Assembly: GCA_020891255.1 (NCBI GenBank)
Contig: BQFW01000002.1
Span: 3,472,001 to 3,536,000 of the forward strand
DNA length: 64,000 bases
Origin: Entomortierella parvispora E1425
Lineage: Eukaryota > Fungi > Mortierellomycota
Direction of reading: 5' to 3'
The number at the start of each line of letters is the position of its first letter. The first letter of the stretch is position 1. Below the pieces are notes generated by a model. It had not been told where the DNA came from, searched no databases, and saw only the letters and a program-made list of their open reading frames with translations. Shown piece by piece: positions 7,878 to 25,312 of this stretch. The position numbers and the translations under genes were made by a program.

Positions 7878-8567
7878 CTACTTGCGCGGAACCTTGACTG
7901 TAATAGTTTTGCGTTTCGCAAACGCCTCGTGTTTGTCTGGACTAGAGGTCAGGGGAAACTCGGGGATATATAGCGACCCAGGGCCATAGTTTGCGATCAA
8001 GGGCACAGGTCCAGAAATTGAGCCACCGTTGCTCCCACCTCGAATTTCAACATCGGCGCAATTCGAATACAACTCGCGGTTGCCCTGAGCATTGTTCCAG
8101 AGCCACATGAGCACTGCTTTGCCGTTGGGGGCATTCTTGGGGAGAGGTACCGAGACCGAGTAGGATTGACCAAGCTTAGTACCCTTGAGGCAATTCCGGA
8201 TCATTGTCTTCAGGACAACCCAGGTCTTGCCAGCATCGTACGAGATGGCCCATTGACAATGACCCCCGCCGTGTGAGGCACCGATGGTGTAGTCGGTTTT
8301 GATGGATTGGCCGGCTTTGAGGACGGTCCGAGTTTTGGATGGGACAGTGTTTTTGCAGAGAGGAAAGGTTTTGCCGCTGTAGGTGCCGATGGGGGCGTTG
8401 AGGTCATAGTCAATCTTTTGTCCCCCAGAGGGTTTAGGGCAACCCGCTCGGGGACTGGAGCGGGCACAGGGGTGAAGGAGTCCAACATGAGCTTCGACGA
8501 CGGCGTTGGAGCAGAGAAGTAGGGTGACCATCAGGAGAAAGAGAACGGAAAATCTTTGTAGTTGCAT
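7878..8567 (-). CDS. Secreted AA11-like lytic polysaccharide monooxygenase (putative chitin-active copper enzyme)
   Basis: The signal peptide ends ...VVEA|H, giving a mature N-terminal His. Second His in ASHGGGHCQ, and GNRELYSNCADV carrying the axial Tyr motif typical of AA11-type LPMOs. Single exon. Confidence 0.8.
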   Translation of the reverse strand: MQLQRFSVLFLLMVTLLLCSNAVVEAHVGLLHPCARSSPRAGCPKPSGGQKIDYDLNAPIGTYSGKTFPLCKNTVPSKTRTVLKAGQSIKTDYTIGASHGGGHCQWAISYDAGKTWVVLKTMIRNCLKGTKLGQSYSVSVPLPKNAPNGKAVLMWLWNNAQGNRELYSNCADVEIRGGSNGGSISGPVPLIANYGPGSLYIPEFPLTSSPDKHEAFAKRKTITVKVPRK

Positions 8568-9271: not shown

Positions 9272-9287
9272 CCCAGAGACAGAAGAC

Positions 9288-9290
<3 letters not shown>
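9272..9290. repeat. Target-site duplication, left copy (CCCAGAGACAGAAGACAGT)
   Basis: Exact 19 bp match to 19094-19112; directly abuts the poly(T) run. The final T is shared with the tail, so the TSD is 18 or 19 bp. Confidence 0.95.
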
Positions 9291-9320
<30 letters not shown>

Positions 9321-9331
9321 AACATTTTATT
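9290..9331 (-). other. LINE poly(A) tail (29 A) with upstream AATAAA
   Basis: Plus strand has T29 at 9290-9318 and TTTATT at 9326-9331, i.e. AATAAA 7 nt before the tail on the element strand. Confidence 0.9.
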
Positions 9332-9477
9332 TGCTATGTCGAGCCAAAGAAGTGAAGTGCTAGACCAAACTATCTACAACCTGAGCAAAGCCGCGTGGTC
9401 CAGACGAACAAAAGACCCCGGATCCCCGCGCAACAAATGCCACGGCTCGTCACCGTGTAATAAAGAAGAGTAAAATG

Positions 9478-12400
9478 TTACAAAAAATGGATCTTCCCCA
9501 TCTTTTCTAATGTCGATAAGTGAACCTGGCCACGCACACAAGCCAGTAAGCGCTGGTCGGCCAGCGTGGGATTGTCTTGGGCACCAGGGCAGAGGCCTTG
9601 GTGGTGGTCGGTGTTAGGCTTTCCGCATTGGCAGGTGTCTGGTGGTAAGATCGTACCAGAGGCATTGTTCCACGGTTGCCCAGTCTGGGCTTGCTTCTTC
9701 ATCTTGGGGCGGATACCTTGTGTCTTCTCCCATGCAATAGTCACTTCGCAGCGCGTCTTCCAGAGCCGAGCTAGGGCATCCCTGTCCAGACGACGAATAA
9801 ACTGATGAGCAACTGCGACCACGACAGAGCGTGGGCCTTTCATAATTGGCCTCCAGGCCTCGATCAGAGCCGAATGGAGCAGTCCTTGGTAAGCAGTGAT
9901 GACAGAACAAGCCGATGCCAACGGAGCTTTGAGCTGTCCCTGCTCAGGGGGTCGGAAGGCTGACAAGTCATGAAAAGCAGAGTAAAGTGATGCCCACAAG
10001 AGCGTGTCCGATGGTTGGTACCATTGGAGTCGTTTCGGGGCTGCAACGTTGGGTGTGCGGGCTTGTTGCTTGCGATGTCTGGTGTCAGCGTCCTCATTGG
10101 CTTTCCTGATAGCGGCCCTGCCCCACTTTGGTATGGAAGCCACCGCATCCGCCCAAATCAGTTGTTGTTGATTGTATGAGTTTGGACAAGTCCACACATG
10201 GTCGTTGTCCTCTGGGGCTGCACGACACAGGCAACAGAGTGCGTCTGCGTACATATCTGGGTGTCGCGCCTGCATGACTGTGAGTGTCGGAAGCATCCCA
10301 TGGAGTTTTTTGATGTGCTGTGTGCGTCGTGACGTGTCCCCGCGGCTGCTGAAGAAAGTATGGACTGGCCGTTTGTCGTGGATGATCGAAAGAGCAGATC
10401 GCCACTCCACGTCTGTCAAGTCACTAATAGATCGCTTGACACGTTTCTGCGCTGTCCACTGTTGATGTCGACGGATAGTAGTCTGCTGTTTAAGAAACTG
10501 CCGCAAATCTGACTCCAGTTGTTGACCGTGGCACGAGGCTGTGAAGGTAATGTCGTTTTGAGTGCTGAAGTCCGCATGCCATGGTGTCGTGTCCTGCTCG
10601 ACAGCGTTGGTAGCAATCGCGTCAGCCATATCGTTTCCCTTGTCACCACTGTGTCCTCGAACCCATTGCACCGCTGTCCGGCCCTCTCGTTCTGCCACCA
10701 CTGTCGCCAAAACTGCCCAGAGGCATGCATGTGTTGCCCGTTGTCGCTTTCGTGGAAGTGTTTTGTGCCGGTCCAGGACTAAGTCGTGATATTGAGTAAC
10801 GACACCCTCATTGTCGAGGCGGACCAAAATGTCTTGCCCTGGAGGCATGGCGACGATCGCAGCAATAAGTCCCATAAGCTCGGCTTTGCCAGAAGAGGCT
10901 TGTCCATCTGTGCGGCCAGGGATAGAGTAAGAGGTGTCCGTGGAAAAGTCAGCCACGCCAAAGGCCATAGCGCACTCTTCAGTACCTGCTCGGACCATCG
11001 AGCCGTCCGAGTATAGGACTCGCTGGTCTTGTGTGATTGGTGATTGACGAAGCTGGTGTAAGAGTTCGGCTTGGGTTCGGGGCATCCACAGCGGGCCTAC
11101 TTTGACAAGGTGGTTTTGCTGTGGGAGAGGTAAAGTAGGAGGTGAAATGTGAAGAGTATGAACAACACTTGGATCAATGGTGACCGTAAGTGGATGTTGG
11201 TGCCGTCCAATACGTTCTCTGTTGGTGATTACATCCTGGTCCCGCTCCTCCGCAGCCCAGGAGATGTACTCGGCTCTGATAAGCTGCCTTTCTTCTGCCG
11301 CCTCCAGGTGTTGTTGGTGTTTGTTGTCTGCGTAGTCGTGTGCGTCCTGGATTTTGTGAGCAAGTCTATCTGCAATGTGTCCGAGCTGGATCTGAGCACG
11401 AGCCTGCAACACTCGGAGCCCCCGCTTGGCAATACTCTCGGCCGCTTTGATGGCCTCGGCTAACCTTTGCGGGTTCTTGGCTAGTTGGCGGCGGTAACGG
11501 GCAGCATGGACCTGAAGTTCTTGACGCCTCTTATCCACTGCAGACTGCAACTCTTGGATGATCTTGGTCCGGGCAGGAATAGTGCCCACGTCGGCTGCAT
11601 TGAGCCGTGAGGTCAGCTCGTCGTCAAGCCAGCGTGATTCAGCTCGCAACAACGCGTCTGCCTCTGGTGGCAGTCGCGCCAAGTACGTCGTAGGCGGGGT
11701 GTCAACGACAAAGTTGTTGTTAGCATCTATACTAGCAGAGACTGAACGCGAGACATTGGTTAAGCCGACAGTAGTTGCGGTGTCAGGAAAGAGACGGCGG
11801 AGGGTAGGGGCTGCAACAAAGTAAGGTGAAATAGAAGAAAACTGAGAAGACAAAGATTGCGAAGATAACGGTGCTGATAAGGATGGAGAAGAAGGTGATG
11901 GTGAACAGATAGGTGACGATGGAACAATAACAGGGAGGGGTGAAGGGGGTGAAAAGGAAGGGTCGCTTACTCCCGAAGACAATGACGAAGAAGATAGAGA
12001 AGAAGAAGGTGACGATGAAGAAGGTGCAAATGAGGAAGAAGAAGAAGAAGAAGAAGAAGAAGAAGAAGAAGACAAAAAAGAAGAAGGAAGGGAGCGCGAC
12101 CTGGGCTCGTATGGTCCCTTTTTCTCTTTTGGCTCTTTTTTTGTTGTCTGGTCTTTTTGGCTGTGAGGGTGTGCAGACCGTGCAGTAGGTGGGTTGTGCC
12201 TTGCCTTTTGTCGGATGGGGTGACGTGAGCCTTTTTGTTGTTGTTTGGGTTCTTTTGCCTCTTTTTGTTGTTTCTTTTTGTCCTGCACGGTCTTGTTTGC
12301 ATCTTGTCCACACTCCCCACTCTTGTTCCGCACCACCGTTCCCACGCGCGCCTCGCTCCAGTCCTCTTCCTCTTGAACCTGCTCGCGCGCTGCCTCTTTT

Positions 12401-15400
12401 CCTTTTGGGCTCCGTGGTCCTCTTGGTATCTCATCGTCCTGCTCCTCTCCCGACGACTCTTGATCCGTGAACGCCATATCCATCTCCCAGATCACCTCTT
12501 CTACAACCTCTGCGCCGTTGCCGTCGCTGGGGCTGTGGTCCGCACTCTGTTCTAATGAATACAATTGGGTAAGTGTGTCTTTGGTTTTGTCTGGCTTTGG
12601 TCGTTGTTCTTCATCTTTCCGCTTGAACGAATGAGTCACTGCCGTAGCAGCTGTTGTAGACACTGCCTTTTGAAGTTCGTTTTTGTTTATACTCACTCGC
12701 TCAAGATCACCTGTAGTTGTTGTGGTGGCCTCCTCTGCCCGGAGCAGAGCACGACGCAGGATGCGTGGATCAATCAACGGCTCTGAATCGGTATCGGACG
12801 ACTCGTACACGCTGGATGTCGCGGACAGAGTTGTGGCGGGTGCGTTGTCCTCGTTCGTTTCGGCAGAATCAGAGTCGCTGGCATCAGGAGGTGTGCAGAG
12901 ATGGACAGTGAGAGCAGCGTACCATGCACGCATCCCGCCAGACAGGCGGTGTCGGTCCTTGAGATCGCGCCAAGATGCAAGGTGGGATCCATCCTCAGTA
13001 ACAACGTCGTGCAGGAATACAATGCCGTCGCGGAAGAGTTGTGGGCCGATTTTGAAGTATGCTTGGGCAGGGATAAGTGTCGACAGCAGTGTAGATGGCG
13101 GGTACTGCGGGAGTTGGACAGGAGCGATTGTAATGGCCCGGTCAACCAAGAGCCCACAAACCTTGGCGAGAAAATGGTGCTTCTTGACCAGACATGAGCG
13201 GTCCGGGGCTTCGAGCGGGTGTTGTACAATAGCAGCAGCAGCTTGCAGAGATGAGAAACGAGCAGCCATGACTCTGCCCACCAGACCCTTGTCTTGTATG
13301 CGAAGGAGGACTGTCGAAATTTGCTCCTCAGCCTGCACGTCACCAAAGTGGCGGAGGCCATACAATCGACGGTGGAAGAGGATACTATTGGGCGTGCCAG
13401 CCGGAAGACCCACTTTGTGCCGAATCATAGTCGTATACCGCGAAACTATCGAGGTAACTTCAGAAGGTGAGAGGATTGTGACTGAAAGACGATACAAGAT
13501 CCGTGGAATTAACACATTATTAACCAAGTAAATGGCCTGTTTGTCTGTGACAGCGCGGCGCGAGAGGACGGCACACAAGGATGAAACTTCCTCCATGACC
13601 ATTCGCTTAGTCGGCTTCGGGATCCCGTCTTCAGTGAACCACACCCCAAGGGAGCGGACGGCTGTGGTGGAGTTGTGGGCTTGTACAGTTGCGTCGCCAA
13701 TGGTGATACTGCGGTCGTCTGTGGAGGCGTTGATGACAATGAGTTCAGTCTTTTTGGGATTAATCTCGATGGCGTTCAAGGTGAAGAATTCTACCGCCAC
13801 ATCCACTGTTTGTTGCATGTTGGCCTGGGATGGGGCGTAAAAGTTGGTGTCGTCCACGAAGGCGCCTGCTGACACCTGAACTGCAGTGTCCGAGGGATCC
13901 TCCAAAAGCCTGGGAAGCCGACGCTGGTCTACCAACGAATTGTGTCGCGTTATCACATAACCGAGTCCCGCCTCCATCACTGCATCTAAAAGGACGTCGT
14001 AGCAAATAAGCCAGAGGATAGGACATTCAACACCACCCTGATCAAGGCCGCAGCGAGGGTGATATGGTGCCGTCATTCCAAAGGCCGTAATAACTTGGTT
14101 GGTTTTCTCGGTTGCAATGGTCGTGCAGAGCTGGATGAACATTGGATGGATCCGAAGACGTCTCAGGCTACGTTCAAGGGTCTGGCCCGGTCCGCAGGTT
14201 ACAGAGTCAAAACAGCGGCGGATGTCCTGGAAGAGTATCCATGCTTCCTTATTGTGCTCCCGAGCATCTTCCATCACCGCATTGAGGATGTGAATTGGAT
14301 CCTTAGTGGTAGTGCCCGGAAGCACTGAGAAATTCGCGCCACGCAGGACCCTATGTGTAGTTAGAACGACGACCATGCGGTCAACCAGAATGGAGAACAG
14401 GATTTTGCGCCCATGTTCCAGTAATGTCAAGGGACGGACGTCTGTCAAGCGACCTGTCCAGCAAGGCCCTTTGGGGATGCAGTACAGAAGGCCTTTCATC
14501 CAAGATGCCGGAAGAGAGGCTTGGGCGCAGCAAGCACGGAATATTAGGTGCAAGAGCAGACTTGCAAAAGGACCTAAATGACGGAGCAGGTCCCCGGTGA
14601 TGCCTGACAGTCCTGGCGCTCTGTTCAACGGTGCTGAAGTGACCGCAGCAGTCATCTCTTCTATTGATGGGGGGTCCATGAGGTTGGCGAACCAATGCGG
14701 ATCAATGTCGTCGCGAGGTGCATAGAAGTCGATCCACTTTCCCTCAAGGCTACCAACCATCCGCGGTGCATGCCACTCGTCACAAAAGTAGGAACGAACT
14801 GTTGCTAGTAAGGTATCAGGATCATCAATCACAGTGGCATGTCCATTCGCGTCGTTGACAATGACATGATCAAGGTGCACACGGGAGGTTTGCACTTCAA
14901 GAATGCTTCGAATGGTGGCCTTGGTGTCTGTTGCAAATCGCAGATTGCGTTGATCGATAGCCGCCTGGATGGAGGCGAAACGGTGCTGGGACACATGCAG
15001 TTGATGTTGGGCACGACTCTTGGTCCAAGCGTGTCGGGCAACGGTGGACCACTCCTGCCATTGAGCTGTCTCTGCATCTAGGGGGGGAAGAGGAGGTAAA
15101 TCAAGGTCCGCCTTGTTTTTGGATGTCCACTGCCCTAGCGTGGCGTGGATATTCGCAATTGCACTTGCTGAAGGGGGGGCTGCCGACAAGAAACCCTTCT
15201 TAACGAGATTAATCGCCCTGCCAATGTCTGCTGTGCGGGCACGGAGTCGTGCGGCGCCACGGGGTGGTAGTGGTCCTCCACCGACTCGCTTGCAGGGGAG
15301 GGTGTGTCTGGCCACAGAGAGAATGTTGGTTTCGAGTATCGAGCACAGGGCCGTGAGCTGAACTGTTGTAAGATCCAGAGCATTGATGGCCGCGATGTCC

Positions 15401-16449
15401 GGTCCGTTCGGAAGCATGGGAATGCCGATTTCTTGGAGGTTGCCATACTCGCAGAGGATGTAGTCAAGGCGCGTGGTGAAAGCTTCAAGTTGTTCACCCG
15501 TGGCGTCAGCTACAATGGCCTTCTTACCACGAGAGGGGCGTTTGCAAGTGCCCGTATCTGCCGACGGCGCTATTAGTGATTGGATAGCAAAGGTGGTGGT
15601 GACGAAGGAATGATCGGAGGAGATGGGGTGTTCAAGAGTGAAGGATGATGCGGTAAGTGTATAGGAAGCAAGTGTGGGGGAGGACCATATCATGTCAATA
15701 CGGCTCTGGTTGTTCCATGTAAATTGTGGGTTGCTTGGGTGTAACAAACGGTATGTGTCCATGAAGGAGTTGTTATCGAGCCATGAGAAGAATGGCAACT
15801 CTGGTAGCGTGGATGTGTGCTGGTCCGCTGCGCGGTCAATGGAGGGGTTGACGACTCCGTTGAAATCCCCCAAGAGGATGACATGGCACCCTGCCATAGT
15901 GAAGTTGTCGATTTGCGTTTGGAGCCAATCGACCGTGGGGGCATATGTGTCGTAATGGGCGCTGCCAGTGCCAGGAAGGTAGCAATTGATAATAGCAAAA
16001 TGTGCTGCTGACTTGAAGCCAAAACGAGCCGCAATTGCGCGGCCGTGTTCGTCAGTAACAGTGTCTAACAGGTATGTGTACCAATGGTCGTGAATGAAAA
16101 GGCCTACCCCACTGCCTCTCGGTTTTGTGGGCGAACAGCTCCACAGAGCACGAAATGGTAGTGAGTAGGTGTCGCGAAAAAATAAAGAGTTGGTTCTGTT
16201 CGAAGGGGCGTTTGTCTCCTGGACGCCAAAAATACCAATGTCATGAAGAGCAGCCAGCTCACACAGCGAATTAAAAAAACCTGAGGATAGACCGCCTTGG
16301 ACATTGATGGAGCCGAGGGTAAGAGTGTTGCGTGGGAGTAAAAGGGTAGGTGGGTTGAGAATATCAGTGGTGTAGTGTGGCAATGGGGAAGGTGCAGTAG
16401 AGGGTGAGGCCGAGGGTGAGGCCGAGGGTGATGTGGGTGCGCTAGACAT
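9478..16449 (-). CDS. LINE ORF2: AP endonuclease, reverse transcriptase, long insertion, RNase H, C-terminal Cys/His motifs (2323 aa)
   Basis: APE motifs GSINVQG, GVQET, LLGDFN, SRIDMI, SDH. RT motifs RAPG, RPLTLL, QDIRRCFDSV, GLDQG, AFVDD (13849-13860). RNase H motifs YSDGS, KAEL, RLDN, WVRGHSG, NDMAD. Zinc-finger-like CCLCRAAPEDNDHVWTC. No stops or frameshifts. Confidence 0.96.
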   Translation of the reverse strand: MSSAPTSPSASPSASPSTAPSPLPHYTTDILNPPTLLLPRNTLTLGSINVQGGLSSGFFNSLCELAALHDIGIFGVQETNAPSNRTNSLFFRDTYSLPFRALWSCSPTKPRGSGVGLFIHDHWYTYLLDTVTDEHGRAIAARFGFKSAAHFAIINCYLPGTGSAHYDTYAPTVDWLQTQIDNFTMAGCHVILLGDFNGVVNPSIDRAADQHTSTLPELPFFSWLDNNSFMDTYRLLHPSNPQFTWNNQSRIDMIWSSPTLASYTLTASSFTLEHPISSDHSFVTTTFAIQSLIAPSADTGTCKRPSRGKKAIVADATGEQLEAFTTRLDYILCEYGNLQEIGIPMLPNGPDIAAINALDLTTVQLTALCSILETNILSVARHTLPCKRVGGGPLPPRGAARLRARTADIGRAINLVKKGFLSAAPPSASAIANIHATLGQWTSKNKADLDLPPLPPLDAETAQWQEWSTVARHAWTKSRAQHQLHVSQHRFASIQAAIDQRNLRFATDTKATIRSILEVQTSRVHLDHVIVNDANGHATVIDDPDTLLATVRSYFCDEWHAPRMVGSLEGKWIDFYAPRDDIDPHWFANLMDPPSIEEMTAAVTSAPLNRAPGLSGITGDLLRHLGPFASLLLHLIFRACCAQASLPASWMKGLLYCIPKGPCWTGRLTDVRPLTLLEHGRKILFSILVDRMVVVLTTHRVLRGANFSVLPGTTTKDPIHILNAVMEDAREHNKEAWILFQDIRRCFDSVTCGPGQTLERSLRRLRIHPMFIQLCTTIATEKTNQVITAFGMTAPYHPRCGLDQGGVECPILWLICYDVLLDAVMEAGLGYVITRHNSLVDQRRLPRLLEDPSDTAVQVSAGAFVDDTNFYAPSQANMQQTVDVAVEFFTLNAIEINPKKTELIVINASTDDRSITIGDATVQAHNSTTAVRSLGVWFTEDGIPKPTKRMVMEEVSSLCAVLSRRAVTDKQAIYLVNNVLIPRILYRLSVTILSPSEVTSIVSRYTTMIRHKVGLPAGTPNSILFHRRLYGLRHFGDVQAEEQISTVLLRIQDKGLVGRVMAARFSSLQAAAAIVQHPLEAPDRSCLVKKHHFLAKVCGLLVDRAITIAPVQLPQYPPSTLLSTLIPAQAYFKIGPQLFRDGIVFLHDVVTEDGSHLASWRDLKDRHRLSGGMRAWYAALTVHLCTPPDASDSDSAETNEDNAPATTLSATSSVYESSDTDSEPLIDPRILRRALLRAEEATTTTTGDLERVSINKNELQKAVSTTAATAVTHSFKRKDEEQRPKPDKTKDTLTQLYSLEQSADHSPSDGNGAEVVEEVIWEMDMAFTDQESSGEEQDDEIPRGPRSPKGKEAAREQVQEEEDWSEARVGTVVRNKSGECGQDANKTVQDKKKQQKEAKEPKQQQKGSRHPIRQKARHNPPTARSAHPHSQKDQTTKKEPKEKKGPYEPRSRSLPSSFLSSSSSSSSSSSSSSFAPSSSSPSSSLSSSSLSSGVSDPSFSPPSPLPVIVPSSPICSPSPSSPSLSAPLSSQSLSSQFSSISPYFVAAPTLRRLFPDTATTVGLTNVSRSVSASIDANNNFVVDTPPTTYLARLPPEADALLRAESRWLDDELTSRLNAADVGTIPARTKIIQELQSAVDKRRQELQVHAARYRRQLAKNPQRLAEAIKAAESIAKRGLRVLQARAQIQLGHIADRLAHKIQDAHDYADNKHQQHLEAAEERQLIRAEYISWAAEERDQDVITNRERIGRHQHPLTVTIDPSVVHTLHISPPTLPLPQQNHLVKVGPLWMPRTQAELLHQLRQSPITQDQRVLYSDGSMVRAGTEECAMAFGVADFSTDTSYSIPGRTDGQASSGKAELMGLIAAIVAMPPGQDILVRLDNEGVVTQYHDLVLDRHKTLPRKRQRATHACLWAVLATVVAEREGRTAVQWVRGHSGDKGNDMADAIATNAVEQDTTPWHADFSTQNDITFTASCHGQQLESDLRQFLKQQTTIRRHQQWTAQKRVKRSISDLTDVEWRSALSIIHDKRPVHTFFSSRGDTSRRTQHIKKLHGMLPTLTVMQARHPDMYADALCCLCRAAPEDNDHVWTCPNSYNQQQLIWADAVASIPKWGRAAIRKANEDADTRHRKQQARTPNVAAPKRLQWYQPSDTLLWASLYSAFHDLSAFRPPEQGQLKAPLASACSVITAYQGLLHSALIEAWRPIMKGPRSVVVAVAHQFIRRLDRDALARLWKTRCEVTIAWEKTQGIRPKMKKQAQTGQPWNNASGTILPPDTCQCGKPNTDHHQGLCPGAQDNPTLADQRLLACVRGQVHLSTLEKMGKIHFL

Positions 16450-18688
16450 TGGAGGAAGCAGGAGGGGTGCTGTCTGGGTAACCAGATGGGTTGCTGTCGG
16501 GCCAAGGGGTGGGGGTGCCTTCTGGATAGTTAGATGGGTTGCTGTTAGGCCATTCTGGGGTGGTTAAGAAGCCAGATGACTGTGAGGTCGACGTGTGCGT
16601 GATAACAGATGGGAAAACAAAGGATGGCGGGATGGCTGTCAGTGGGGAACCGAGATCCACACTGTCCTGTGAGGGGCGGGGAAGCTGGGTGCTCGGAACG
16701 AGGACCTGGCCTTGTCCTTGAGGTGGTGTAGATGAGTGAGTGGCAACGAAATGTGCGAGCTGTGCTCTGAGTGCCCGGCTCTCTGCTGTGACGGCCTCCA
16801 GTGCAGCAGCGTGGAGCTGTGCCTGTCGTTGGAAAGCAGTCTCCATTTCTGCCTTCGCCTGTTGCAGATCCTTTGCCGCCTGACGCTTGAAAGCACGCAA
16901 GTCGTTGAGTTCTTGTTGGGCTATGGCGCTGAGTTGTCTCTGAGTGTCCAGCTTGCCCGCCTGCTGTGATGCGGCGCCTAGCCTAAATTGCTGTGCTGTC
17001 ATGATTTGTTGGCGTTCTTCAGCGAGGGTGCGGTGGTTGGGAGCTTTGACAGCAACGCGTTTGCCATTGCGGTTACGAACTAGGGGGGTGTCAGTGTCTT
17101 CTACTTCCTCCTCAGCGGTGTTGGTGCCGTCCTCTTCAGCAAGAGACTCTTCCGTGTACCCTTCGGTGTCTCCCATGGCAATGTCCTCTTCAGCGGTGAC
17201 GCCCTGGGGAGTAGATGGGGCGACAGAAGTGGACGGGGCGTGGATGGGTTGTGCGATATCGGGGACAAGTGTGCTAATCAGTGCCACCAGGTTGGAGAGT
17301 TGATGTTCCAGGTTTTGGAAGTGGTGGGTAGTTGTAGCCTGTGCCGCCTGGAAACGTTCATTGACACTGTGGCTCATTGCATCCAGTGCCGTCTTCCAGG
17401 CAGGCACCTTCGCGTTTGTGGCGGACGATTGAGGGTTAGGTGCAGCGACACCGGAGGCAGCACGTGCTGTTGTTGGTTGTTGATGTGGGAGAGTGCCAGA
17501 TGCCCACACATTTCCCGCTGCAGTGGGTCTACGTGGGGTAGGGGCAGGAGTGGTAGCAGGGGAGGGGACTTTGGTGACAGGAGTGGGGGGCTTCCTTTTG
17601 TCTTGGAAGATACGTTGGTTGTTCAGCTTACGAGTTTCAGCCTTGGCTGCGAGGAGTTGTCGCTGGGGGCATCCATCTGCACGACGGTGCTCATGAGAGC
17701 CGCACTGAAAGCATGTTGCGGTGTCTGTCGAGACCCAGACAGTTACCTTTGGTTGTCCCGAGATGTCCTGTAAGACAAACTTTTGGTTGCAAAGCGATGA
17801 CTGTTGCTCACTGTCAGCAAAGAAAACATACGCCTCCTGAAGGCGACGGCCAAGACGGGGTTGAAAGGGCATAGTGATGCCATGGAAGTGACCATGGTCG
17901 TGGAGAAGGAGAGCAACATCATATGGTGTGTAGTGACGAGGGAGGTTGGCGAGTTTCATAGTGAGGTCTGGGTTAAATGGGACGTTTTGGGTACCAAGGC
18001 GGCGGACAATACCAGAGTCACTGCCGATGAGGACATATGACAGCTGCTCACGCTGCATGGCCTCGACCGACGCCTCCGACTCAAACAAAATAGTTGCCTT
18101 TCGCATGGTGTGTTTGCCATTGAGGTTGGAGGAGACTCGTTCAACCACTCCATAGCGAGTAAGGGCAGCAGCGATGTCATCGTGTTTAGTATCATATTTC
18201 AACGACCATACGTCAATTGATCGTTTCTCTTCAGCAACATGAAGAGCAGTGGTGAAGGGGCGGAAAGGAACAGGTTTGCCCTCTTCATCAGTGGTACCTG
18301 CCGCGTACAGTGCTTGACGTTGGGATTCCTCTCCCACCTCAAACACGAAAAATGGTTTGGTGGCCTCGCCCTCAATAGGGCGAACGTGTTGAATTGTAGG
18401 AATGCTGACTGGGACGGCCAGGCCTTTCATGCAGACGTAGAGAGACGCGAGACGGGATTTCATGTTTGGGCCTACAAACGCAGAAGCCTCAATCATAACG
18501 TTGGCTCGATGGCGACGAGGTTGAACAGTCACAAAATCCGCTTCAGGGCGAGCAGGCTCCTCGTTGCTGACTGTTTGTGTCTGGGGTGGAGTTGGAGTGG
18601 CGGGGATGTCGGCCGTGGTGTCCATAGCCGTATCCTGGGTGGCACGCCAATGGGTGCCAGGGGCGCGAGGGGTGGTAGTGGCTGACAT
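16442..18688 (-). CDS. LINE ORF1 (gag-like nucleic acid-binding protein, 748 aa)
   Basis: Two RRM-like segments (RSIDVWSLKYDTKHDDIAAALTRYGVV; MKLANLPRHYTP...EAYVFF), zinc knuckle CFQCGSHEHRRADGC (17669-17713) and a coiled coil. Directly upstream of ORF2 and overlapping it by 8 nt. Confidence 0.92.
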   Translation of the reverse strand: MSATTTPRAPGTHWRATQDTAMDTTADIPATPTPPQTQTVSNEEPARPEADFVTVQPRRHRANVMIEASAFVGPNMKSRLASLYVCMKGLAVPVSIPTIQHVRPIEGEATKPFFVFEVGEESQRQALYAAGTTDEEGKPVPFRPFTTALHVAEEKRSIDVWSLKYDTKHDDIAAALTRYGVVERVSSNLNGKHTMRKATILFESEASVEAMQREQLSYVLIGSDSGIVRRLGTQNVPFNPDLTMKLANLPRHYTPYDVALLLHDHGHFHGITMPFQPRLGRRLQEAYVFFADSEQQSSLCNQKFVLQDISGQPKVTVWVSTDTATCFQCGSHEHRRADGCPQRQLLAAKAETRKLNNQRIFQDKRKPPTPVTKVPSPATTPAPTPRRPTAAGNVWASGTLPHQQPTTARAASGVAAPNPQSSATNAKVPAWKTALDAMSHSVNERFQAAQATTTHHFQNLEHQLSNLVALISTLVPDIAQPIHAPSTSVAPSTPQGVTAEEDIAMGDTEGYTEESLAEEDGTNTAEEEVEDTDTPLVRNRNGKRVAVKAPNHRTLAEERQQIMTAQQFRLGAASQQAGKLDTQRQLSAIAQQELNDLRAFKRQAAKDLQQAKAEMETAFQRQAQLHAAALEAVTAESRALRAQLAHFVATHSSTPPQGQGQVLVPSTQLPRPSQDSVDLGSPLTAIPPSFVFPSVITHTSTSQSSGFLTTPEWPNSNPSNYPEGTPTPWPDSNPSGYPDSTPPASSNV

Positions 18689-19093
18689 ACTTGAGTATTG
18701 AATTGGGTTTTTTTTTTTTTTTTTTTGGTTTTCTGGGATATTTGGGGAATTTCAAGGTGTTACAAATATAAAAAGGGTAGTGGGCACAGAGAGGGAAGGA
18801 ACGAGGTAGGGGCACTAAAACGGAGGAGGGGGGAAGGGGAAGGCGAAAAGAAGAGGGGGATAGGGGCACGGCCCTCGCTCACTGGGAACCAGGAACCAGG
18901 AACGGGCTGGGTTCGAATGTGCGCTGCGAATTAACTTTCAAATGGCCGCGAAATGGCCAAGATGAGGCGAATGGCAGAGAAAAAAAGATTGAAATGAACG
19001 TGGACACTAGGGGAATCCGGCTAGCTAGGGCGACCAGTATGGCGACCCTCGTGCGTACCGTAAAACGTGTTTTTTTGTTTTTGTGCAAGCGCT

Positions 19094-19112
19094 CCCAGAG
19101 ACAGAAGACAGT
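19094..19112. repeat. Target-site duplication, right copy
   Basis: CCCAGAGACAGAAGACAGT, identical to 9272-9290. Flanks diverge immediately (A vs T on the left; T vs G on the right). Confidence 0.95.
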
Positions 19113-19199
19113 GACTCTACAGGGCCCAGTGCAGAAAGAGCGAGAAAATCTGGGACCTAGTCCACAAGTTGCCCCTTTTTTTGGGCGTGCTTCGTGAAG

Positions 19200-19273
19200 G
19201 ACTGTGTGTAGTGTAGTGGGAATTCAACCGCCTGTGAAGCTGCATGCCTGGGTTCGAATCCGGGCTCGGGTCT
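19200..19273 (+). pseudogene. tRNA-like element / degenerate tRNA (His-GTG-like loop) with intact Pol III A and B boxes
   Basis: A box TAGTGTAGTGG (19209-19219), perfect B box GGTTCGAATCC (19251-19261) at tRNA-like spacing, and a 7 nt loop CT-GTG-AA. The acceptor, D and anticodon stems contain several mismatches, and there is no T4+ terminator directly downstream. Confidence 0.6.
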
Positions 19274-19348
19274 AGACTTTACTCACCATTTGCTATATAC
19301 ATACGTCTCTCCCTGGTATATAGGATGGCCTCTCGGGAGAGCTGTGAA

Positions 19349-19391
19349 GTTGGTACACATGCCCGTTGGTACGTGATACCCGTTGGTACGT
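19349..19391. promoter_or_regulatory. Triple GTTGGTAC motif upstream of TFC4
   Basis: GTTGGTAC at 19349, 19365 and 19382; the last two lie within an exact 13 bp direct repeat CCCGTTGGTACGT. Function is inferred only from position. Confidence 0.35.
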
Positions 19392-19828
19392 CATAACTGC
19401 GAAAAGCGGCGGCGTAGCATGCTCATGAAGGGGGAGTCTAGTCACCTGGAAAGGGTGGCTAGATTTCTTGCTCCAGGATACAGCTTTCTTTTTCCTTTGC
19501 TTCTTGACAAAAAGAAAAAAGAGAAAGCCTCGATTGAAGATCTTCAAGGTGTGATCCAAATGTTTGGTGGCGTTTTTTTCTTTCTCTGTCTGGGCTCAAC
19601 TCTGCGCATTGTGTGCAAAAAGCTGCAGGTGCATGCAATGTTGAATGCTGTCAGGAATGAATAAAACGGCAGTATCCTTCGTCGCAAGTGGGATCATGAA
19701 AATTGAGCACGTGACCAACTTTTTTTTTTTCGCCCAACCTCGTCGTCGCGTGGATCCCTTTGCATGATTTCCTTCCATTTCTCCAGCCTCAAGCACTTCA
19801 TTCTTCAATTGACACACCCCACGCTCGC

Positions 19829-22800
19829 ATGGAGACCAACGCTGGCAGCAGCAGCACAGGAAATCAGCCGCCTGGGAATGGAAAGGCACATCCTCAGCCC
19901 TCGATCCCAGGACATGCTGGTGGAAGCACTTCGCAGAACCCGCTCATGACGCGTGTGAATCAGAGCTCGGGCGACCTGGCGCAGTTCGCCACCGTAGGAA
20001 CACAACAGGCACCGCCCTCGGTAATAGGCGACTTTGTAGGATTATCTAGTGGACAGCGACCTCCACACCACCGGCCACATGGCGGGGCACAAGATATTGG
20101 CGATACCTTGCGAAATATCCAACTCGGAGGTCTGGATGACGAGACGAATGAACTGGATGAAGATATGGAGGAAGACGACATTACATTAGATTACAGTCAA
20201 CTGCAACGACAAGAGCAACTGGGGAATGAAGAGGCATCTGGCTCCTCGACTACAGGAGTCCCCATTTCTGTGGACATGATGGCTGTCGCATCTGCAGTTG
20301 ACCCGAAGGGACTTATGGCCATATCTGGACAAGAGTAAGAGCGGATGAAATGTTTTGTATGCACACACCCTTTGTATTCTATTGAAAATGGCACTGATAT
20401 TGTCCTCGTTCCTGTCTACTTTACTTTTGATAGTTCATGGGACCCAACAGAGGGGTTTGATGAAGGACTGGATGAGGATGAACTGGACATGGATGACCCT
20501 GCGATGGAGGAGCTGGGATTTGCTCTTCAGCCAAAAACAAAAAGAGCCAAAAGAAAAGAGAGAAAGGTATGGTGACAATAGCGTTGATGCTTGTTTTATT
20601 ATAATTCTCTCATAGTTAACCCTGTCAATTATTCTTGTTGACATAGACTCAGAGGAAAGGAGGCAACGCCAATATTGTATATAGTCCAGAAGTACAGAAG
20701 CTGCTAGGAATGGCCAACAACGCTTACGTCAGGAAGGAATTTAACGAAGCTGTGGAACTCTTTCAACAAGTCATCGTCAAAGATCACCGAGTCTTTCAGG
20801 CCTGGAACATCATGGGAGTCATCCAGGAAGAGCTGGGCAACACGGAAAAGGCCTTGCAGCTCTATCTTGTAGGAGCTCATTTAACGCCGAAAGATGGTGC
20901 ACTCTGGAAAAAGCTCGCAAAGATTTCAAAGTATGGCACAGCACCAGGCATTATGGCATTTGTTTTATAGGAAAAAGGATCCTGACATCTAATTTTCATG
21001 TCAACACAGGGATTGTGGATATAACCAGCAAGCACTATACTGTTTTTCCAAAGCTTACTCGGCCGACAAAACGGACTTGGATGCTCTTTGGGATCGGTCT
21101 GTAATGCAATCGATAATGGACCAACCGGAAAAGGCCATTAGGGGATTCACGACTCTATTGGCCTCTCGTCCACACTATATGCCAGCCCTGGAGGAAATCG
21201 TCAGTTTATACAGTACACAAAGTCAGGACAACAAAAAATACCAGGAAAATATGCACCGAGCATTGGAACTGTATGAGGCTGCTTATCTGCACTACTCCTC
21301 CATGCCGGACCGGTTTGCCACTGCGAGCGACGATCCTTTTGATGTTCATGTGGAGAATCAAGAGGAAGGCGAACCTTTCGGGTACTCTGCATTGAACATG
21401 CTGAGTGATCTCTATATCATGTTTGAAGAGTACGAAAAACCACTTCAGATCATCAAGACTTGGTCAAGACGACTTCAGAAGAGAGCTCATCAGACTTGGT
21501 GGGATGATTACAAGGATGATCGGGAGTTTGACACGGACGCCTATGACGAGGAGTTACAGGCATCCTTGGGCGAGAATCGAACGCGAGGACTGCCAATCGA
21601 TTTGCGTATCAAAATCGGAACCTGTCGACTCATGTTAGAAGAGGTCAAAGAGGCAAAGGTGAGTCTTGCAAAGTTTAAGAACCGAGCAGGCAAACTTCCT
21701 GTCAGGACCATGAATGAAACTGACCTATCTTGATGATCTATTCTCTAGGCCCAATTCAAATATCTTTGGAAATGCTCCGTCGAGGATTTTCCAGATCTGT
21801 ATGAGGGAATTGCTGAGCTCTATGTTTCAAAGATGATGTGGAAGGACGGTTATAATGTCATTAGAGCCATGCTCCAGTTTGATGAGCTGGATATTCCCAA
21901 GGTTTGGATCATGGCAGGAGAGTGTCTTCGAAACATGCATCGCACTAAGGAGGCCCGTGATTTCCTTGAGCAAGGTTGGTGTTGTATATGAGCAAACGAT
22001 TCGCAGGACTTTTGTTAGCGATCAACAAACTGATTTTTTTTTTCCGTTTTGAAAACTAGCCCATCGCGCGGATCCAACAAACCTGAACGTGAATCTTTTG
22101 CTGGCTGAGGTTTATGAAGAACTGGGAAGTCTTCCTCAAGCGCTGACGCTCGTAAATTATGGTAATGATTGCATTGTGAATCGCCAGCTGGATATATCGG
22201 CCCAATGTCGTATTAATTACGGCCCAACGACTCCTATTGTTTTTCACCATTGTTATAGTTCGTCAGGTCAATGCTGAAAAGCAAGCAGAGGTCGAAAGGA
22301 AACGCAGGGAAAACAAATTGGCCAGGGATGCTAAACTTGGCAAGGACACTTCCGAGCTTGATGACCGTGTTCCTCAGGCCTATCTTCTCGACCCCAACTA
22401 TGCCAATCTGGGCTACCGACAAATTGCTCCAAGGGTGGAATCGTCAACTCAAAAGGATATTACCCAGAGTGCGGCAGTGGAAGCCATGGAGCGAATCCGA
22501 AGAGCTGGACAAGATCCAGCATTGGCTGCCGAGTATGCCAGCGAAGACCGAGATCGCGATATTCAACTCTTAAGGTCGCTACGAGAGCAGGAGCGAGCAG
22601 AGAGGGCACGTAAGGCTCAGCAGCCGAATGCCCAGGATGACCAAGAGGTAGCTGACAAATTCAATCGATTGGAGGCTATTTTCCTGAGGATCAACCAGAC
22701 GGAGAAATCGAGAGTATGGGAGAGCATGAGGGAAGCCGTCGCAGTGACGCGACAGGATCGGACACAATTTATCCATGCCGCGCGCGAACTCATTGATATC

Positions 22801-25312
22801 TTCAGGAACAACAAGGCGTTCTTCAAGGGCAGGACCCAACCCTACTTGGGAGGAGAAGCTAGAGCCTGGAAGTATCGCCGAGACCCGTCTAATGCAGATG
22901 GACTTTCTGAACACGTCAAGGATATGTCTGAACGTCTCGGAAGAGCCATGGGTGTGCAGGATGCAGCTCTACCGACAACCAGAGAATTAATCGATAGCCA
23001 CCTGCCGAAACCTGAGCCACCAACCAGTTACCGTGGTATCCCATTTGATGTTTGGTATCTCGTGGTGATCCGCCAAGCTGTCTATTTGACGTACGAGGAT
23101 CGTTATTCAGAAGCAGCAGAGCTATTGATGAAGATGTACAACGCCAACGTGTTTTACGCCGTTCCACGCCGAAGATCGGGAATCTTTTTGGTCTTGCTCG
23201 CCTGCGCGCTCTGGTCTGGTGACTATGGAGGAACCATCACTGCGGGTCGCTGGATCGCCCAATTCGGAGGGTTCCGACCTTTGCCGAACAAAATCTTTCA
23301 GAGTATCTTTACGTTTGGATTTAGAGGTGACCAGAAGTTCCTTGCATGGTCACAATCAACAACAAGTAAGGTCCTGAAGCGCCAAATGGAGGTCATGCGA
23401 GAAGTCCAGGGAAAGCGCGTGGCATTAACGGCTAGAAGGAGGCCATTGAGAGTCAACAAGAAGAAGATTCTAAAGCGAGGGCCAAAAAAGGTTTTCCATA
23501 TGATGGCGCCCACTTTAGAAGCTTCGGTCAAACGATTCAAGCAGGATGTCAGCGTTGATTTGAAAACGAGCGCTGAGTACCGAATGGTCCTCGAACGATT
23601 CCGGGACGGAGATGGTGCAAGCTCTAAAGCCCCTCCAGAGAAAAGGGCATACAAGAAGAAAGCAGCAGCCGAGGATCCATCGCTTTCTCATGAGGCGTCC
23701 CATGATGTTGCAGAGAACTCGGAGCAGGAGGTCGAAATTGCGGCCGAGTTAGCCAGTGGACCTTCTTCTGCTTTGGAAAATACGCCTCAAGATGGTGCAA
23801 CAGTCAGGAAGCGGAGGTTTATTGACGAGTCTGTAGATGAACCTCAAGAAGTAGAATATCAGTCTGGAGAGGAGGTAGTAGAGGAAGTTGAGAGTAGTGG
23901 TGACGATGCTTTTGACGACGACGACTATGAGGACGAGGAGCGGTACAAGACTGATTATGAGCGAGACAGAGGCGCAACAAACATTGATGACGATGATGAG
24001 AATGACACGGACTGGGAAGATGTAGAAAGCTTTCCTGGACAGAGATCAGGAGTGTTTGGAGTGAGACGGCCAGGCCCTAGAACTGCATCAGCGGAAGATG
24101 AACAAGATGATAGGCCTTCACCGGCAGCTGCAAGTCAGGCCAGGCATGGGTCAACCCATGTCAACGCTAATGATGTTCCAGGAGAACAGGAAGCGGAAAA
24201 GAATAGGACAGTGAGGGGCAGCAGGCCTTTCACGGAGCCGATGTATCCAAAGTTTCCAATCACTTTGGCCATTTTCTACGCCCATGTCTTTGCCATGACT
24301 CGGTCGCATGCCTCTGCTGCTGGTGAGGACAAAGAGACAATGCTTTTTTTTATTTTTTTATTATGGTTAAAACGAGGTTGTTGTGGACTTGGTTTCTGAC
24401 ACCCCCATCCTTCTTTTCTTAGAGCTTTACCTGGAGTGTCTGGAACATGCACCCACTCAACCTATTATCCACCTATTCGCCTCTCTACAGTACATCAACA
24501 CAGCTATGCAACGGTCCACACCTAATCGACAGCTCCTCATCGTTCGTGGACTCACGCTTCTGCAAATGTATTATCACCTCCGACGAGCGGGACATGGTAC
24601 TATTGCCTATGCACAACTCGAGAGCGAGAACAAGGCTAAAGGCAAGGCTCCAGCCCCACTTCCTACTATCCCGCCCGTTTCTAAAAAGAACAGCTGGATG
24701 GAGCAAGCCAACCAAGCGTCGGAAGAAGCGTTCAAGGCTGCCACGGCTCCAGATCCCTCTCCAGAGCAACAGTCAAAGGTATTGCCGCTCTGTCAACAAG
24801 AGGCAGAGTACAATTTTGCGAGGGCTTTTCATCAGATGGGGCAGAACAATCTGGCCCTGATGCACTACCGACGTGTTTTGGAATTGCCATCTTGGCGACA
24901 GGTGGAGCGTAACCGCAAGGAAGCCGAGAAGGCGCAGTTGCGGGAGGCTAGAGACATCAGACGGGCGGAAAGGGCGGAAAGGCGAACTCTGGCGATGGAG
25001 AGAAGGATGCATCTGACAAGTGAACGACGCCAGGCTGAAGCTGAACAAACCAACGGAAAGGGAAACAAAGAAGACGACGAGGATGAAGAAGATGATGATG
25101 AAGAGGAGGAAGAAGAGGAGGATACTGATTCCGAGGACGATGAAGATGGTGAAGGAAGCTCAGAAAAGAGACGGATCCGACTGGAGGGGGCACTGGATGA
25201 TGACCCCACGGATCTAAAGAGGGAGGCCGCTTTCAACATGGCCAAGATCTTTATGATGAGCGGTGCGTCTGCGCAAGCCAACATGGTGATGCGGAAGTAC
25301 TGCACGTTCTGA
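19829..25312 (+). CDS. TFC4: RNA polymerase III transcription factor TFIIIC TPR subunit (Tfc4 / tau131 / GTF3C3)
   Basis: Phase-consistent exons: 19829-20334, 20434-20566, 20647-20930, 21010-21658, 21749-21974, 22060-22161, 22259-24322, 24423-25312. Acidic N-terminus, then TPRs (GMANNAY...AWNIMGVIQEELGNTEKALQLYLVGAHLTPKD). C-terminal EAEYNFARAFHQMG and DLKREAAFNMAKIF...KYCTF match the Tfc4/GTF3C3 pattern. Confidence 0.9.

Follow-up and report, generated by a model that had tools for sequence, protein, structure and literature searches.

The gene for the TFIIIC subunit TFC4 in Entomortierella parvispora is preceded by a tRNA-like element with an A box and a B box, and this arrangement raises the question of whether TFIIIC feeds back on the expression of one of its own subunits. 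Yeast offers a precedent for such a loop in ETC6, a site of the TFC6 promoter that works at −150 to −90 by hindering TBP (Kleinschmidt et al. 2011, summarised in PMC3334521; see also PMC3395662); yeast ETC sites are B-box-only and conserved between related species. The initial annotation of the 64-kb window, by which we mean the whole stretch of DNA analysed, proposed that an ETC6-like feedback site had arisen from a tRNA relic in front of TFC4, that its boxes had been preserved while the tRNA structure had not, and that the boxes might also have attracted the adjacent LINE.

The head of the element (19202–19272, forward strand) is tRNA-derived and comprises the A box, the B box and a T-arm-like hairpin. 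The A box, TAGTGTAGTGG (19209–19219, forward strand), is a good match to the consensus and the B box, GGTTCGAATCC (19251–19261, forward strand), is a perfect one; their starts are 42 bp apart, which fits tRNA positions 8 and 52 and confirms the tRNA spacing that had been described. The rest of the tRNA is degraded. None of the acceptor, D and anticodon stems is intact, the acceptor stem lacking its 5′ half, ARAGORN finds no tRNA across the whole window, and the Rfam tRNA model scores 16.4 bits at 19206–19267, below its gathering score of 29 bits, so that the element does not have the cloverleaf of a functional tRNA gene. Nor was a terminator found directly behind the tRNA-like part: the nearest run of at least four T residues past the B box is T5 at 19489–19493, 228 bp further on. 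A functional tRNA gene has its T run no more than a few bases past the 3′ end, and the real tRNA genes of E. parvispora carry a T4–T5 run close downstream. The broken cloverleaf and the missing terminator are therefore as first annotated. In the partial tRNA set compared, the closest partial match of the head is tRNA-Thr(CGT), chiefly in the T arm and the 3′ acceptor half. Neither the A box alone nor the B box alone is rarer than expected by chance in 64 kb; chance occurrence of the pair is nevertheless ruled out, because the entire stretch of 470–570 bp belongs to a repeat family.

The description as a tRNA relic thus holds for the head but not for the implied uniqueness, since about 10 copies or fragments of this tRNA-derived repeat are present in the genome (7–10 by search). 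The nearest paralogue lies 22 kb away and is 94% identical over 473 bp plus ~100 bp upstream; other copies adjoin F-box/LRR, FAD-monooxygenase and hydrolase genes. Copies align across an upstream block, the head, the hairpins and the T5 run, and form subfamilies ~75% identical to each other; ARAGORN, run on every family locus, finds no true tRNA among them. An LTR pair is ruled out by the presence of CDC37, g1, an LPMO-like gene and the LINE between the two direct copies 22 kb apart. Judged by sequence, these copies make up a small, undescribed family of tRNA-derived units of Pol III type in a Mortierellaceae fungus.

The window copy starts at 9272–9289 (CCCAGAGACAGAAGACAG), which is also the left copy of the LINE TSD; this start is placed here because paralogue homology begins at 9274. 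Its 5′ extension (19112–19193, forward strand), common to copies C2:3468813, C3:580k and C10:208k, ends at a junction (19193/19194) where a ~75-bp block of the other copies has been deleted. In most copies this block holds the E-box GGTCACGTGA together with ACTGACCG, and in the major subfamily GCGCCACCAA; the window copy is without it. Behind the head, the unit body (19273–19488, forward strand) contains hairpin stems that are kept family-wide, for example 19305–19312 with 19335–19342 and 19438–19446 with 19454–19462, and in the subfamily of the window copy it has an additional insertion of ~29 nt. The T5 run (forward strand) is the earliest possible Pol III stop, and is followed by the 3′ part of the repeat (19494–19666, forward strand), with TTTGGTGGCG from ~19562, T7 at 19573–19579 and GTCTGGGCTCA; the 94% paralogue homology stops at 19666. 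A complete family unit has, in order, the upstream motifs (E-box TCACGTGA, GCCACCAA and CTGACCG), the A/B-box head, a body of ~220 nt in which three hairpins are kept, and T5 ~290 nt from the start, and as a sequence looks like a whole Pol III locus in the style of a tRNA gene. Its upstream motifs are those typical before real tRNA genes in E. parvispora: among 39 tRNA upstream regions, TCACGTGA is present in 19 (and nowhere in the window), CCCTTAA in nine, GCCACCAA in eight and CTGACCG in four.

This layout invites comparison with tRNA-derived SINEs and tRNA pseudogene repeats, for example Mg-SINE of Magnaporthe. In them, as in the family described here, the A and B boxes lie in a head derived from a tRNA, the body has no relation to tRNA, and the copies are scattered and diverged. 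SINEs, however, share an A-rich, simple-repeat or LINE-derived 3′ tail, whereas the family copies stop at ...GTCYGGGCTCA, with no A-tail, poly(A) or LINE-like tail behind it; a BLAST search of all family loci with the LINE as query gave no tail similarity, the matches being the window LINE itself and the repeat flank in the query. SINE copies also carry TSDs and become homologous at the Pol III start, but no TSDs are seen at the sharp borders of the C2:3004k/C2:3179k pair, and ~90 bp upstream of the presumed start is conserved among family copies.

The LINE itself is full-length (9290–19093, reverse strand; 9.8 kb), with intact ORFs, and is the sole genomic copy having its 5′ region. Its poly(A) appears as a T run on the forward strand (9290–9318), ORF2 (9478–16449) encodes endonuclease, reverse transcriptase and RNase H, and ORF1 (16442–18688) encodes an RRM. 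The right TSD copy (19094–19111) is a perfect 18-bp duplication with 9272–9289 and sets the LINE border at 19093, which rules out that the stretch is part of the LINE 5′ UTR. The LINE stands head-to-head with the element ~100 bp upstream of the A box, the proximal end of the right TSD being 98 bp from T8 of that box. Copies of this LINE are 98–99% alike, and the family is also found head-to-head upstream of tRNA-Asn, tRNA-Thr and tRNA-Leu, with the 5′ junction 124–153 bp from the gene; at tRNA-Asn (L071), a site struck repeatedly, the equivalent TSD-to-T8 distance is 112 bp. In a test based on coordinates only, five LINE loci lie near listed tRNAs against 0.33 expected (P ~2e-5), with the tRNA on the LINE 5′ side in all five and on the opposite strand in four. 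The element has the features of a target of this tRNA-homing LINE, namely a TSD, a LINE 5′ end facing the unit and an insertion point ~90–125 bp upstream, and the proposal that the boxes attracted the LINE gains support from this shared geometry. Since the LINE family behaves alike at real tRNA genes, recruitment of Pol III factors by the boxes probably persists, and TFIIIC/TFIIIB may occupy them.

Targeting of this kind has been described in Dictyostelium, where TRE5 non-LTR retrotransposons insert ~50 bp upstream of Pol III genes (PMC5006619, PMC3159450) and TRE5-A insertions have served to locate putative binding sites of Pol III complexes (PMC5391098). Like TRE5, the LINE inserts upstream of Pol III genes at a short and constant distance, and for that reason its insertion can serve as a natural reporter of TFIIIC/TFIIIB binding; it differs in distance (~100–120 bp), in its fungal host and in having a degenerate tRNA-like unit as target here instead of a tRNA gene. 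There is no CACGTG between gene and LINE junction at tRNA-Thr (L025) or tRNA-Leu (L067), yet both are targeted. The insertion in the window indicates that a broken tRNA without the upstream E-box block is still handled as a Pol III gene, and the LINE family therefore probably reads the internal-promoter complex and not an upstream motif.

Downstream of the element, the gene at 19829–25312 (forward strand) has several introns, is single-copy in the genome and is the orthologue of TFC4 (TFIIIC tau131), as annotated. Its exons are colinear with yeast tau131 residues 135–206, 353–451 and 895–951 and match TFC4 of relatives exon by exon; Pfam and PDB searches of the 720-aa exon came back blank, and identity was assigned from the remaining exons and the relatives. 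From the end of the B box to the ATG, on the same strand, is a distance of 567 bp, in agreement with the original estimate of ~570 bp. Between repeat and ATG lies unique DNA (19667–19828, forward strand), which is probably the TFC4 proximal promoter; it contains CACGTG at 19708, a motif with four sites in the whole window, and is about as long as the entire CDC37–TFC4 spacer in relatives. In all three Mortierellaceae relatives compared (L060, Linnemannia gamsii; L061; L062), CDC37 lies directly upstream of TFC4, its end 170–200 bp from the ATG, and in these spacers there is neither an A nor a B box, nor does the family model find a hit. The relatives belong to other genera (TFC4 exon identities ~46–80%), and the element could therefore be older within Entomortierella. 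In E. parvispora, the CDC37–TFC4 pair is split by a rearrangement with the repeat at the break: CDC37 is inverted at the window start, still with its divergent neighbour g1. The direct orientation of the two repeat copies does not agree with a simple inversion through recombination between them.

The reading we prefer, and hold with considerable though not complete confidence, is that a small tRNA-derived family of Pol III type has one of its copies here, put before TFC4 by rearrangement, likely still bound by factors and targeted by the LINE. A lineage-specific rearrangement, flanked on its two sides by the window copy and its 94% paralogue, would have turned the g1–CDC37 block round and parted CDC37 from TFC4, and the copy would thus have come to front TFC4 by genome rearrangement and not by selection for a feedback site. 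TFIIIC/TFIIIB assembly on the internal boxes of the copy probably continues, and a young LINE of the tRNA-gene-targeting family inserted head-to-head ~100 bp upstream of the A box, although the E-box block had been lost from this copy. That the neighbouring gene should encode a TFIIIC subunit would be a coincidence of low prior probability (roughly 1%, given 10 copies and 6 subunit genes among 11,641 predicted CDSs) and is counted against this explanation.

Another reading, which we consider unlikely, is that the family comprises genes for a functional Pol III ncRNA with a tRNA-like 5′ domain, and that the window copy is expressed, with its proximity to TFC4 incidental. T5 or a longer run follows soon after the last hairpin in 7/7 aligned copies, and its position predicts an RNA of ~290 nt that may be transcribed from the unit. 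Every promoter component is retained in copies of the family, among them the E-box block, which lies outside the presumed transcript, but the window copy has lost that block, and several others are truncated (C5:549k at its 5′ end) or have a damaged A or B box. Two body stems are almost unchanged while the loops differ between the ~75%-identical subfamilies; compensatory change, however, affects only one of 65 predicted hairpin pairs and the covariation term is ~zero, so that any structural role of the family RNA would be putative. Rfam has no match for the unit body of either subfamily, and no relative was found in the three related contigs or in metagenome pattern scans, of which the first returned 0 matches and the second 12, all rejected as chance since the family model fits none. 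In yeast, the 5′ leaders of RPR1 and SNR52 hold A and B boxes that serve as the Pol III promoter for a longer RNA encoded behind them. The family has a similar tRNA-like leader ahead of longer sequence, but RPR1 and SNR52 are single, conserved, essential or known genes, whereas the family is decaying, multi-copy and without known product.

It is very unlikely that the copy is a TFIIIC-only, ETC-like site feeding back on TFC4 and evolved apart from yeast ETC6/TFC6. As with ETC6, a B box of consensus sequence stands near a TFIIIC subunit gene and not within a true tRNA gene; the accompanying good A box, the same-strand position before a single-copy TFC4, the LINE insertion, which argues for recognition by Pol III factors, and the yeast precedent are all in keeping with such a site. 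Unlike the yeast ETC sites described above, however, the element combines an A box with a terminator, and this, with the T5 stop kept family-wide, suggests a full transcription unit. It also lies outside the core promoter in which ETC6 works, with the unit body, the T5 stop and ~330 bp more between its B box and the TFC4 ATG, and it belongs to a dispersed family, the other copies of which adjoin unrelated genes. Preferential retention of the boxes is not observed: three copies have a crippled B box while two body hairpins are almost unchanged, and the boxes are kept no better than the remainder, either family-wide or between the 94% paralogues (4 changes in the 75-nt head versus ~6% overall). 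Absence upstream of TFC4 orthologues, which the initial annotation had itself set against its proposal, is what the three relatives display, and the main autoregulation reading is not supported.

Least credible is the idea that the neighbouring LINE family copied a canonical tRNA-derived SINE, which landed before TFC4 by chance. The head with its internal Pol III promoter, the dispersed copies, the 5′-truncated member and the presence in this genome of an active LINE family with poly(A) would suit it, but the tails are missing, no TSDs are seen at the borders of the C2:3004k/C2:3179k pair, copy number is very low (~10) and a retrocopied Pol III transcript would not carry promoter-type sequence from upstream of its start.

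The outcome is mostly deflationary, in that a repeat family and a genome rearrangement, not a conserved feedback circuit, account for the boxes in front of TFC4. There is a slim chance that a live TFIIIC/TFIIIB platform between the LINE 5′ end and the displaced TFC4 promoter ties TFC4 output to TFIIIC availability, by interference or by a barrier effect that may operate between LINE and promoter; if true, this coupling would be a recently born feedback on a TFIIIC subunit other than that of yeast. The young, precisely bounded LINE insertion provides a natural occupancy probe, and the family displays the complete layout of a Pol III locus in E. parvispora (E-box, GCCACCAA, CTGACCG, A/B boxes and T4–T5 stop), which offers a handle for the upstream control of Pol III genes in Mortierellaceae.

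The A box TAGTGTAGTGG (19209-19219) and the B box GGTTCGAATCC (19251-19261) recognised upstream of TFC4 in the initial annotation both lie on the plus strand, at a spacing that matches tRNA positions 8 and 52. The observation is real. The cloverleaf is broken, as had been described: ARAGORN makes no tRNA call over the whole window, Rfam gives no match at gathering thresholds, and the Rfam tRNA model scores 19206-19267 at 16.4 bits, below its cut-off of 29. Within the tRNA-like head a T-arm-like hairpin is retained, the 5′ acceptor half is missing, and neither the D stem nor the anticodon stem is intact. It was also correct that no terminator directly follows the tRNA-like part, the first run of at least four T downstream of the B box being the T5 at 19489-19493, and that the B box ends some 570 bp (precisely 567 bp) upstream of the TFC4 ATG at 19829.

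The element belongs to a tRNA-derived family of Pol III type that is undescribed and low in copy number. A 101-bp query spanning the boxes matches seven places within the window's own genome, a 1.2-kb query finds a paralogue 22 kb upstream on the same strand (C2:3469000-3469478; C2, C3, C5, C9 and C12 are contigs of this genome), and a sequence-only model of the core identifies some 10 copies or fragments, distributed over five contigs. The paralogue is 94% identical across window positions 19194-19666 and shares about 110 bp of further sequence upstream. Identity is 85-93% inside the major subfamily and about 75% between that subfamily and the window pair. The other copies lie beside genes for F-box/LRR proteins, an FAD monooxygenase, an alpha/beta hydrolase and unknowns; none adjoins a Pol III-related gene. 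No copy is a true tRNA, and no relatives of the family were found in two metagenome scans.

The family unit comprises, in order, an upstream block, the tRNA-derived head, a body with three hairpins, a T5 run and a second conserved block. In alignments, an upstream block of ~90 bp is common to five copies, all of which carry an E-box (GGTCACGTGA) together with ACTGACCG or a sequence close to it; two copies of the major subfamily, C2:3004k and C2:3179k, additionally carry GCGCCACCAA in this block. The window copy has lost a block of ~75 bp at the 19193/19194 junction. A run of T5 or longer stands shortly past the last hairpin in all seven aligned copies, some 290 nt after the presumed start, and the block beyond it contains TTTGGTGGCG, a T run and GTCYGGGCTCA. 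The repeat family bears GCGCCACCAA and its inverse at its two ends. Two of the three hairpin stems are almost invariant and their loops vary between subfamilies; RNAalifold finds a compensatory change in 1 of 65 pairs and a covariation term of approximately zero, which does not demonstrate selection for RNA structure. The boxes had been thought specially preserved, which is not borne out: three copies (C3:580k, C12:398k and C5:549k) have a damaged B box, which means that conservation in the family is not highest at the boxes, and the 75-nt head has four differences between the two 94% paralogues, about the average rate.

Real tRNA genes of this fungus were represented by 39 non-redundant upstream regions of 150 bp each. 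TCACGTGA is found in 19 of these, mostly between -55 and -110 and frequently in two copies, and has no occurrence in the 64-kb window; GCCACCAA (8/39), CCCTTAA (9/39) and CTGACCG (4/39) are all far above window background. A T4-T5 run, often within CTTTTGC, lies close 3′ of the gene end. Since the family unit shares upstream motifs of real tRNA genes, it copies a whole tRNA-gene-style locus, beyond the transcript alone, and this argues against simple retrocopying. Family copies lack an A-tail and show no similarity to the LINE, and no target-site duplications (TSDs) were seen at the borders of the C2:3004k and C2:3179k pair.

The downstream gene is confirmed as TFC4, encoding the TFIIIC subunit tau131: its exons are colinear with yeast tau131 residues 135-206, 353-451 and 895-951 and pair one by one with the TFC4 exons of relatives, and it is present once in the genome. 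The last exon (24383-25312, plus strand) also gives a weak Pfam match to Virilizer_N (28.7 bits against a cut-off of 27.7); as this exon aligns to the tau131 C-terminus, the match is probably an artefact of helical repeats or low complexity. In Linnemannia gamsii, the best named relative for TFC4, and in two further relatives (L060, L061 and L062, respectively), CDC37 lies directly upstream of TFC4 on the same strand, with 170-200 bp from the CDC37 stop to the TFC4 ATG. These three spacers lack A and B boxes and do not match the family model; the element is thus absent upstream of TFC4 in these relatives, an outcome that had been named in advance as refuting an ETC-like (extra-TFIIIC) site. 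In E. parvispora, CDC37 is encoded on the minus strand at C2:3470435-3471933, immediately before and at the start of the window, with its divergent neighbour g1 retained at 1951-3594, so that the g1-CDC37 block is in reverse orientation with respect to TFC4. Of the two repeat copies, one lies past the 3′ end of CDC37 and the other ahead of TFC4. An LPMO_10-like gene (7878-8567, minus strand) has a paralogue, ~69% identical, at C2:3467669-3468070 (L039:170-571), which sits in opposite orientation next to the second copy of the repeat; the pair suggests that the surroundings of both repeat copies underwent duplication and rearrangement at an earlier time.

The 162 bp from the repeat end to the ATG (19667-19828), about the size of the ancestral spacer, likely constitute the TFC4 proximal promoter. 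The 64-kb window contains only four CACGTG sites, and one of them is here, in GAGCACGTGACC at 19708, 121 bp before the ATG; it is similar to the E-box preceding tRNA genes. This site may be due to chance, because relatives carry CTCGTGAC at the comparable place; alternatively, it may reflect a regulator common to tRNA genes and the genes for Pol III factors.

TFIIIC feedback on TFC4, as had been proposed, is unsupported. In yeast, the B-box site ETC6 lies at about -150 to -90 of TFC6 and lowers TBP occupancy (PMC3334521), whereas the B box here is 567 bp from the ATG, accompanied by an A box and followed by the unit's own body, its T5 stop and about 330 bp more; moreover, the site belongs to a dispersed repeat and is not conserved in the relatives examined. 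Adjacency to a TFIIIC subunit gene has a chance probability of roughly 1% (about 10 copies, six subunit genes and 11,641 predicted CDSs), which is unremarkable when many windows are scanned. No observation favours a selected feedback loop; a bound Pol III complex may nevertheless have some effect on TFC4, for example by forming a barrier that separates the LINE from the promoter.

The suggestion that the tRNA relic attracted the LINE finds support. A perfect 18-bp TSD, CCCAGAGACAGAAGACAG, at 9272-9289 and 19094-19111 delimits the LINE to 9290-19093 and therefore places the tRNA-like unit outside it. ORF1 (RRM; 16442-18688) and ORF2 (endonuclease, reverse transcriptase and RNase H; 9478-16449) are on the minus strand, and the poly(A) appears as a T run at 9290-9318. 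ORF2 is unusually long (2323 aa): about 870 residues separate the reverse transcriptase match (658-936) from the RNase H match (1809-1950), where an insertion of ~590 aa had initially been noted. The genome holds more than 45 LINE copies, mostly 5′-truncated and many 98-99% identical; the 5′ region is found in the window copy alone.

LINE copies lie head-to-head with tRNA-Asn (L071), tRNA-Thr (L025) and tRNA-Leu (L067), with 5′ junctions 124, 126 and 153 bp from the gene. Insertion at the tRNA-Asn site has occurred repeatedly at one and the same duplication: in C9:250,267-252,135 the 16-17 bp target CCCTGGCAGTGCGCCC upstream of the gene recurs after three successive poly(A) tails, indicating serial insertions at one nick site. 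By coordinates only, and with 59 listed nuclear tRNA genes, 5 of 36 independent LINE loci are at most 3 kb from a tRNA gene, against 0.33 expected (Poisson P about 2e-5); in all five the tRNA is on the 5′ side of the LINE, and in four it is on the opposite strand. In the window, where LINE and unit are also head-to-head, 98 bp separate the duplication end from T8 of the A box, the equivalent at tRNA-Asn being 112 bp. The geometry is that seen at tRNA genes, and the LINE has thus dealt with the degenerate unit as it does with Pol III genes. There is precedent for LINE insertion marking such sites in Dictyostelium, where TRE5-A insertions have served to uncover binding sites of Pol III complexes (PMC5391098, PMC3159450, PMC5006619). 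From the canonical present distance, and from the targeting of tRNA-Thr and tRNA-Leu although neither has CACGTG between gene and LINE junction, we infer that the 75-bp block had probably already gone when the LINE arrived, and that the LINE probably reads the complex sitting on the internal promoter.
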